Sequence record: LC494302.1
Length of the DNA: 64,000 nt
Strand: one strand, 5' to 3'
Part shown: piece by piece, positions 18,735-20,291 of the stretch
How the letters are laid out: the number at the start of each line of letters is the position of its first letter
Numbering within the stretch: position 1 is the first letter of the stretch
The notes under the pieces: model-generated
Told to the model about the DNA's origin: nothing
The model's input: only the letters and a program-made list of their open reading frames with translations
Database searches by the model: none
Program-made: the position numbers and the translations under genes

Positions 18735-19829
18735 ATGAGTGATTTTTTTGATTCATTTGTCAGTACTGGTACAAGTATTGTAAATGGCGTTATTGATAAT
18801 ATAAACATTGTTCGTGAACCTGCTTTTCAGAACTATAATGCTGCACAACGTGTGTTTGGTACAGCAGGTGAAATGGGGTTTTCATTTTATAATTTACCAA
18901 AATTCAAAAATAGTTTTATCATAGAATTTGTTTTAACACCTTTTGCAAAAAACTTTATTAAAACTCAATTACCAGATACACATACAGATTTTGATGTTAA
19001 TAATGTATCATGTTTTGTTAAAGATGTAACTTTACCAAGTTTTTCATTTAATATTGAAACAGTAAACCAATATAACAAAAAACGACTAGTTACTGGTGAC
19101 ATTGTTTACAAACCAAGTAATGTCGTTTTTTATGATACCGTTGATGGTGCTGGTTACTTACTAATGGATGCATATAGAAAGTTTTATTATGGTGATTTCT
19201 TTGATAAAAATCCACAGTCATATCGAAATGATGTTCTAAGTACACCTGAAAACTTTAATGGTTTAGGTGGTAACTGGGGACGTTCAGTAATGAACAATGG
19301 AAACTACGATAATCAGTACTTTTTCAAATCAATTAACATATATGAGATTGATAATGAAACATATACTGTACATAACATGATAAATGTATTCATTGAAGAC
19401 GTACAATTAGAAACCAAATCTATGGAAAGTGAAGCAGACCCTTCATTAATATCGTTAACTATGCGATATGAAGCATGTAACAACTTCGGACCAGAAGGAT
19501 ATTTGAGCATTGGTGTACCAACTATGGAAATAGCACAACTAATAACAGACACAGAAGGTCTTGGTGTTAGTGGGTTTTTTAAGTATTTTGGTGAATTAGA
19601 CGACAAAACCAAAGGAATTTTAACAATTGGTAAAATTATCCGAGCAGGTACGTCAGTTAGTGATATAATAAGTAGTGCTGGTGATATATTGCGTGGCGAC
19701 ATTACTCCTGACACAATTCGAAACATAGGTTCTGCTGTAACCAGAGGTGCTAACGCCATAGGGTTTGGTAGTTTGGTTTCTGAAGCAAGTTCAAAATTCG
19801 GATTAGGTAACATTTTAGGAGATTTTTAA
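18735..19829 (+). CDS. Tube-fold baseplate/tail initiator-like protein (gp48/gp54-like)
   Basis: [22 protein letters not shown]...[10 protein letters not shown] tube-superfamily pattern; structural context. Confidence 0.55.
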
Positions 19830-20291
19830 TGGCTTTCAATCAACAATTTAACCCAGCAAAGATAACAAATACTAAGCAAGCTCAAGGTATCTTTCCTATA
19901 AAAAACATTAAAAAGTATAAAAGTAATAATCAACCAATATACCGTAGTTCGTGGGAAAAGGACATAATGATTTCATTGGATAATAATCCAGCAGTCATTG
20001 AATGGAGTATTGAGCCGTTTAGTATTCCTTATGTTAGTCCAATAGATGGACAAGTCCACCAGTACTGGCCTGATTTTTATGTACTGTATATTGGTGCTGA
20101 TGGTAAGCAACATGCTCAAGTACTAGAAGTCAAGCCATACAAACAATGCCACATGGAGTTGGCTAAATCCAAAAAAGAAAAAATTGCAGTTGCTATAAAT
20201 CAATCCAAATGGGCTTATGCAATGGAATTTTGTAAAAATAACCGGATTGGAGTTTAAAATTATAACAGAAAGGAATCTATACAAAAAATGA
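19829..20291 (+). CDS. Head completion nuclease (T4 gp4-like) with a +1 frameshift at CGG 20243-20245
   Basis: YRSSWE, WSIEP..IPY, YWPDF, EVKP and NQSKW motifs. Zero frame stops at 20257. The +1 frame gives [15 protein letters not shown] (T4 gp4: GIKFRILTEDGL) and ends in an ATGA overlap with the next gene. Confidence 0.85.

Follow-up and report, generated by a model that had tools for sequence, protein, structure and literature searches.

A probable +1 recoding site at a rare CGG codon in the head-completion nuclease gene of Asteriusvirus phages

Introduction

Yeast retroelements and some mitochondria offer well-documented cases in which the ribosome shifts into the +1 frame at a slow sense codon, and the established natural bacterial case of +1 shifting is prfB, which combines a stop codon with a stimulator. 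Here we describe a 64,000-nucleotide stretch of DNA (sequence record LC494302.1; hereafter the window, numbered from its first letter) that carries a gene resembling the T4 gp4 head-completion nuclease gene and broken by one extra base at a CGG codon. Across this gp4-like region the window is identical to Escherichia phage 121Q (KM507819; genus Asteriusvirus, 348.5 kb). On comparative sequence grounds, we consider it likely that real +1 translational recoding at AAC_CGG_A (underscores separate 0-frame codons) yields the full-length, 153-residue form of the protein, and we hold the exact tRNA events at the shift site with somewhat less confidence.

Several described systems resemble this arrangement. 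At Ty3 sites (GCG_AGU_U), the tRNA in the peptidyl (P) site cannot re-pair in the +1 frame, and at Ty1 sites (CUU_AGG_C) a tRNA-Gly reads GGC (PMC5009743). Glass-sponge mitochondria have +1 shifts at CGG_A or UGG_A, very rare codons that arose where a C or T was inserted 5' of a GGA codon (PMC5009743). In Escherichia coli, CGG_C is the top-scoring context for +1 shifting in the aminoacyl (A) site, each cell contains about 639 copies of tRNA-Arg(CCG), and mass spectrometry has confirmed a +1 shift in yehP (PMC2790909).

The locus described here shares features with each. As in Ty3, the P-site tRNA is unable to re-pair, and out-of-frame binding in the A site is what we propose; as in Ty1, the incoming tRNA would be a tRNA-Gly. 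Unlike either retroelement, it involves a bacterial ribosome and host and would restore one protein rather than produce a Gag-Pol fusion, and the 121Q site showed nothing equivalent to the 14-base 3' stimulator of Ty3. The parallel with glass-sponge mitochondria is that one base inserted 5' of GGA makes a very rare codon and that the shift would restore a conserved protein; sponge mitochondria have a reduced tRNA set, whereas the E. coli host does have a tRNA for CGG, with which shifting would compete through normal decoding. With yehP and the other FSscan candidates of E. coli (X_CGG_C) the locus has in common the host ribosome, a CGG in the A site and the scarce tRNA-Arg(CCG), but the yehP shift gives a truncated side product of unknown use. 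Unlike our site, prfB (CUU_UGA_C) shifts at a stop codon with a Shine-Dalgarno-like stimulator 5' of it, and its P-site tRNA truly re-pairs (CUU to UUU). Events of this kind have been described before; the apparent novelty lies in the setting, in which the ribosomes are bacterial, no stimulator is apparent, two genes and an entire phage clade are involved, and CGG is avoided almost completely elsewhere.

A fixed frame break in the gp4-like gene

Position 19829 of the window corresponds to position 268573 of KM507819, in which gene 555 is annotated as a T4 gp4-like head completion protein of 142 residues. The original prediction, made from the letters and reading frames of the window, had the 0 frame ending in FCKNNRIGV, placed a CGG at 20243 and read the +1 frame on to a TGA, and all three are borne out by the sequence and its frames. 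The features of the gene are as follows.

19829..20242, plus strand: 0-frame part of the gp4-like gene, codons 1-138, ending ...FCKNN (open-reading-frame list, sequence, PF08722, PHROG 218)
19829-20257, plus strand: 0-frame open reading frame of 142 residues, ending ...FCKNNRIGV and a stop (open-reading-frame list, sequence)
20240..20246, plus strand: proposed shift site AAC_CGG_A, with the P-site Asn codon, the A-site CGG and the overlapping +1 codon GGA
20243-20245, plus strand: codon 139, CGG (sequence)
20243, plus strand: extra C relative to unbroken relatives, the base to be skipped (DNA alignment with Hallingskeid and 7t3)
20244..20291, plus strand: +1-frame tail of 15 codons plus TGA, the stop being 20289-20291 (conservation, unbroken relatives, P0006 model)
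20255..20257, plus strand: 0-frame stop TAA, end of the non-shifted 142-residue product (sequence)

With the +1 shift, the product would have 138 + 15 = 153 residues. N138 would then be followed by GLEFK..., as in the ...NGLEFK... of EJP2, 7t3, Hallingskeid and P0005-P0044, and the joined product gains and loses no residue. At the position of the break, the DNA of Hallingskeid and 7t3 aligns as AAT AAT GGC TTG/TTA in a single frame.

Thirteen sequences of the clade were checked base by base (121Q, PBECO4, slurp01, SD-6_S16, WPEC3, EC.P1, BF17, CMSTMSU, Turkey5, JNE01, A4, UE-S1 and ph0011). Every one of them reads AAT AAC CGG ATT GGA, at gene identities of about 79-100%. In a length census based on a 91-base query and matches of exactly the query length, the extra base was present in all 36 GenBank records of the Asteriusvirus clade, and records of the RaK2, K64-1, 7t3, Munch and XaC1 types were one base shorter at the site. 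Relatives of the RaK2, 7t3, EJP2 and Mimasvirus types lack the extra base and have one open reading frame; a single frame ending ...N-G-[LI]-E-F-K-... was found in EJP2, 7t3, Hallingskeid, RaK2, CBB, GAP32, XbC2 and five IMG/VR contigs. Fourteen related loci were recovered from IMG/VR, none of which is a further member of the shifting clade. The 36 records are independent isolates from many laboratories, countries and sequencing platforms, and the break is kept among subclades that differ at 15-20% of positions, with no stop or indel in the +1 frame. The extra base is thus real and fixed in the clade and, as judged from the sequences, the insertion has a single origin in the ancestor of an Asteriusvirus subclade. 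With the single-frame relatives one base shorter in the alignment of orthologues, the central claim of the original prediction, that a +1 shift at CGG is needed to reach the conserved C terminus, is supported.

Two of the records show further irregularities. The A run ahead of the next ATG is shortened in CMSTMSU, which is flagged UNVERIFIED_ORG, and SD-6_S16 has additional indels and split coding sequences in and around the gene; both look like assembly errors.

Selection on the +1-frame tail

No position of the 15-residue +1 peptide varies within the clade. Six columns of the tail differ at the DNA level, and every change is silent in the +1 frame; in the 0 frame each is non-synonymous, and two are switches between a stop and Gln. 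The synonymous share of possible substitutions in the tail is 19%, which puts the chance of six out of six at about 5e-5. The 0-frame tail, by comparison, takes the forms RIGV-stop, RIGI-stop and, in phage A4, a 13-residue read-on, where a TTT-to-TTC change that is silent in the +1 frame turns the 0-frame TAA into CAA. Purifying selection acts on the +1-frame tail but not on the 0-frame tail. Since none of the six variable sites alters the +1 peptide, it is very unlikely that the tail is that of a decaying pseudogene. The original prediction had favoured either recoding or an assembly error over a pseudogene; the first of these stands, and an assembly error is excluded by the 36 genomes. As for its proviso that the truncated 142-residue form might be conserved in relatives, such conservation is found in annotation only, the 0-frame tail being variable and the +1 peptide invariant.

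The same comparisons locate the change of frame. By homology the junction lies between N138 and G, and GLEF is common to the outgroups. Because GLEF is shared with them and is kept by synonymous changes, the shift should precede the GGA. JNE01 has a TAG in the +1 frame eight codons 5' of the GGA and lacks any later start codon; this leaves about 30 bases within which the frame can change and rules out an independent start for the tail peptide. Two other candidates were rejected: an upstream AAA_A slip site, which reads AAG in half the clade, and a shift of the stop-codon type at GTT_TAA_A, given that A4 has no stop there and that GLEF is kept through synonymous changes.

Family, fold and the role of the tail

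The gp4-like open reading frame matches Pfam PF08722 (TnsA-like endonuclease N) with E 2e-16 (60.7 bits, cut-off 26.5). Against PHROG 218 ('head closure'), the 142-residue frame matches with E 2e-40 over profile positions 2-131 of 148, and the unbroken homologue P0006, which is 78% identical and has the nearest unbroken tail, reaches position 143 of 148. Residues E43, D82, E100 and K102 are invariant among 26 aligned homologues and all lie in the 0-frame part; by analogy with TnsA and T7 endonuclease I, they would be catalytic. Towards the C terminus, the motif [EK]F[KM]-[LIVM]2-TE, for which the T4 gp4 peptide cited in the original prediction stands, is present in 47 of 47 unbroken homologues aligned, down to 40% identity, and in an alignment of 50 homologues F142 and E147 never vary and E141, T146 and L150 hardly do (P0006 numbering). 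This C-terminal strand and helix, with its EF-K-hh-TE motif, is missing from the annotated 142-residue frame and is encoded in the +1 frame, and the domain would be complete only with the shift.

An AlphaFold model of P0006 has a predicted local distance difference test score (pLDDT) of 89.2, and its tail forms a strand (141-145) and a helix (147-151) at a pLDDT of about 92. Residues 12-153 of the model align with residues 39-171 of the TnsA catalytic domain (Z 11.1), and comparison with viral 'Head completion nuclease' models in BFVD gave template modelling (TM) scores of 0.78-0.85. A sequence search of solved structures returned only a marginal match to T7 endonuclease I (E about 0.09); it was the fold search that reached TnsA. 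According to the model, the tail is the last strand and helix of a conserved TnsA-like nuclease fold. The gene is predicted to encode a T4 gp4-type head-completion nuclease with a TnsA-like PD-(D/E)XK fold, alike in family and fold to the T4 gp4-type nucleases and to the catalytic domain of Tn7 TnsA (PHROG 218, PF08722, Z 11.1, BFVD). Its neighbours are tail tube, sheath and virion protein genes, consistent with a role in head completion or head-tail joining. Every other member of the T4 gp4-type family examined has a single open reading frame, and recoding would be needed in this Asteriusvirus clade only.

A second proposed shift site in genes 39 and 38

A second break with the same appearance lies in 121Q, outside the window (coordinates of KM507819).

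29505-29188, minus strand: gene 39 ('structural protein'), in which CGG is codon 96 of 105 (GTT CGG ACT)
29505-28845, minus strand: genes 39 and 38 read as one split gene, with an extra base at GTT_CGG_A

From its GGA, the +1 frame is open for twelve codons and runs into the ATG and frame of gene 38. The Turkey5 homologue is a single open reading frame of 219 residues with one base fewer exactly at this site, and the 24-residue +1 reading in 121Q matches its Turkey5 counterpart. WPEC3 keeps GTT CGG A amid changes, AGG to CGA among them, that are silent in the +1 frame, and its 0-frame tail differs from that of 121Q (RTST-stop against RTSSKRSLWS-stop). The extra base was found in 32 records and is lacking in Turkey5 and JNE01. 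PHROGs holds a 218-position family for the fused protein together with a separate family for the split C-terminal half. Read from these sequences, the two sites are independent single-base insertions that became fixed at differing depths in the tree, each of which creates N_CGG_A with GGA in the +1 frame.

CGG usage

Codons were counted in 60 non-overlapping open reading frames of at least 80 residues in the window (19,712 codons). A single in-frame CGG was found, that of the shift site, against 160 out-of-frame CGG trinucleotides in the same frames; in frames of at least 150 residues, none of 581 Arg codons is CGG. Three parts of the 121Q genome (34,434 codons, about 36% of the genome) contain 2 CGG, where 10-14 would be expected from the G/A third-base ratios of other codon families. 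Both are shift sites, and CGG is the rarest codon. WPEC3 has 2 CGG in 15,043 codons and ph0011 has 1 in 14,444, a shift site being one of the former and the sole one of the latter. EJP2 and 7t3, in contrast, have 16 and 14, respectively, per about 15,000 codons sampled, and when CGG is pooled as a share of Arg codons the shifting clade (5 of 2,174) differs from EJP2 plus 7t3 (30 of 1,112) with a Fisher p of 3e-10. In 121Q, CGG is almost confined to the shift sites.

Other codons of the form NCG are used 26-62 times in the same samples. The additional in-frame CGG of WPEC3 (CAG CGG GAC; sampled piece 26290-26619, minus strand) is codon 13 of a hypothetical 109-residue frame whose start may be further downstream, so that the CGG there may not be decoded. 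In the sampled 170-220 kb piece of the Salmonella phage 7t3, CTG is nearly unused, with 8 in 15,025 codons compared with 64-143 in the other sampled phages.

tRNA genes

No tRNA gene was found in the window. The 121Q genome has a tRNA cluster at 72.6-78 kb, comprising Gly(UCC), Ser(UGA), a tRNA-like Arg(UCU), Ser (anticodon ACT according to both ARAGORN and the 121Q record), Met(CAU), Asn(GUU) and Thr(UGU); the cluster contains no tRNA that reads CGG. The phage tRNA-Gly(UCC) (72682-72754) has the anticodon loop C-U-U-C-C-G-A with G37, and its bases 34-37 are complementary to CGGA. Its anticodon stem contains one mismatched pair. A similar tRNA-Gly was found in 23 records only, those of the 121Q/PBECO4 group and UE-S1, compared with 36 that have the shift, which rules out its G37/CGGA pairing as a requirement.

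The tRNA-like gene at 73585-73666 lacks a D arm and has a long variable region, and its loop CUUCUAA implies Arg(UCU). It is called tRNA-Leu(taa) in the 121Q annotation and tRNA-Arg in that of Sharanji, was missed by ARAGORN and scores only 32.6 bits with the Rfam tRNA model.

The downstream gene

The next gene begins within the end of the +1-frame tail.

20288..20842, plus strand: downstream gene of 184 residues (PHROG 16202, unknown function), whose ATG overlaps the +1-frame TGA as ATGA

The original prediction took this overlap, at 20288-20291, to be a coupling used elsewhere in the window. The overlap is there, and the same one does recur, although two only were found among frames of at least 80 residues. 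A four-base overlap between an unbroken gp4 gene and the downstream gene is also present in 7t3, Hallingskeid and RaK2. Coupling through the ATGA would reach only ribosomes that have shifted. The downstream product is labelled terminase small subunit in one record and hypothetical in others.

Proposed mechanism and points against it

The ribosomal nature of the event, the tRNAs that act in it, its efficiency and the uselessness of the short product are the parts that we infer. A ribosome holding peptidyl-tRNA(Asn) on AAC (20240-20242) would find CGG (20243-20245) in its A site. It would wait there, as CGG needs the scarce host tRNA-Arg(CCG) and is a codon that the phage otherwise avoids. A Gly-tRNA(UCC) would then take the overlapping GGA (20244-20246), skipping the C at 20243, and translation would continue for 15 further codons to the TGA at 20289-20291, the stop codon that shares bases with the ATG of the next gene. 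Ribosomes that decode CGG would end five codons on, at the TAA after RIGV, and release the 142-residue protein, which would be without the last strand and helix and probably inactive. At the second site the counterpart would have Val-tRNA in the P site, the same wait and Gly-tRNA(UCC) on GGA. Since the +1 frame offers no re-pairing for the P-site tRNA, we regard the event as Ty3-like rather than as slippage of the prfB or Ty1 kind.

Several observations weigh against this proposal or limit it. Re-pairing of the P-site tRNA in the +1 frame would be poor at both sites, with a mismatch at each (AAC to ACC; GUU to UUC). RNA folds of 20228-20330 and 20246-20300 are no better than shuffled sequence (z 0.46 and -0.01), and no Shine-Dalgarno-like sequence was found 5' of the shift site; a non-structural 3' element may still be present. 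Because no stimulator was found, shift efficiency in E. coli could be a few per cent only, a level that could suit an enzyme needed in small amounts and seems low for a virion protein. The virion proteome of phAPEC6, which is identical here, lists neither the gp4-like protein nor gp173. The 121Q codon count covers about 36% of the genome, and RaK2, in which the gene is unbroken, also has no CGG in 14,798 codons. This rules out CGG avoidance as a trait of the shifting clade alone. Because of RaK2, the avoidance is best seen as a permissive background that makes the insertions tolerable, and not as proof of a dedicated signal.

To our knowledge, gp4-type proteins are not expected in virions. A proteomic record of the trans-frame protein was not found in the literature on this clade, and the papers on 121Q, PBECO4, phAPEC6, Sharanji, RaK2 and Asteriusvirus make no mention of a frameshift.

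A stronger version, which we regard as doubtful, is that CGG in infected cells may no longer act as an Arg codon and may mean 'skip one base, then read GGA'. This could come about if the phage reduces the amount of usable tRNA-Arg(CCG), or if the tRNA-Gly (UCC, G37) that it provides pairs with the whole of CGGA. Single-base insertions in essential late genes may then have been tolerated, and twice fixed, with CGG purged from other genes.

Alternative explanations

The annotated 142-residue protein might itself be functional, with the 45 bases downstream kept for another reason, such as the ribosome-binding site of the next gene, or with the tail lost only recently. A 142-residue frame is called in every annotation of these genomes, the four invariant residues E43, D82, E100 and K102 all lie 5' of the break, and an AAAGGAA about 15 bases before the next ATG could be a Shine-Dalgarno sequence. 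A ribosome-binding site would not, however, confine six of six substitutions to third positions, or a synonymous first position, of +1 codons, and the 0-frame tail differs in both length and sequence, as in A4. The break has been kept through about 20% nucleotide divergence with no +1-frame stop or indel, the segment that would be lost is the last strand and helix and holds family-invariant residues, and a second gene shows the same pattern. We judge a functional 142-residue form improbable.

A four-base reading is, in our estimate, very improbable. Here the phage tRNA-Gly(UCC), with its G37, would read CGGA as Gly or stabilize out-of-frame binding. Its loop fits, CGG_A with GGA in the +1 frame occurs at both sites, and 121Q also encodes tRNA-Asn(GUU), the P-site tRNA of the first site; moreover, TrmD methylates G37 only after G36, and the G37 of the phage tRNA-Gly may thus be unmodified. 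Yet this tRNA was not found in WPEC3/BF17, Turkey5/JNE01, A4 or ph0011, all of which have the first site and most the second, and its loop is of the usual 7-base size, one base short of the 8 found in known quadruplet readers. It would be at most a booster in one subclade.

Correction of the frame in the RNA, by transcriptional slippage or by editing that removes one base, is a highly improbable alternative to shifting by the ribosome. The comparative data show the need for a net +1 correction and not its stage, but neither site has a homopolymer run, only CC and GG dinucleotides, and the upstream A5 run is broken (AAGAAT) in half the clade. Known transcriptional slippage needs long A or T runs (PMC5009743). 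What the two sites have in common is a rare codon, not a slippery template.

Single-base indels are common in assemblies and were seen here in CMSTMSU (a short A run) and in the SD-series Salmonella phages (split coding sequences), but an error of sequencing or assembly in the 121Q record, or a mutation acquired there in the laboratory, has a negligible chance of explaining the break, and sequencing error is excluded, because the base is carried by 36 of 36 independent isolates and persists across subclades 15-20% apart, with outgroups one base shorter.

Implications

If +1 recoding at AAC_CGG_A is real, the annotation of at least two genes would be corrected in about 36 public genomes, and the case would serve as a warning to gene callers that a recoded gene may lie behind a short 'truncated' open reading frame in which the stop soon follows a unique rare codon. 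It would also provide a simple, genetically tractable E. coli system for shifting of the Ty3 type, and would mean that rare-codon avoidance and recoding are able to evolve together in a virus. For the phages themselves, a clade of widely isolated jumbo coliphages, several of them put forward as therapeutic agents, seems to rely on a CGG_A shift, with no stimulator, for its head-completion enzyme, and most of its members seem to rely on a CGG_A shift for a virion protein as well.

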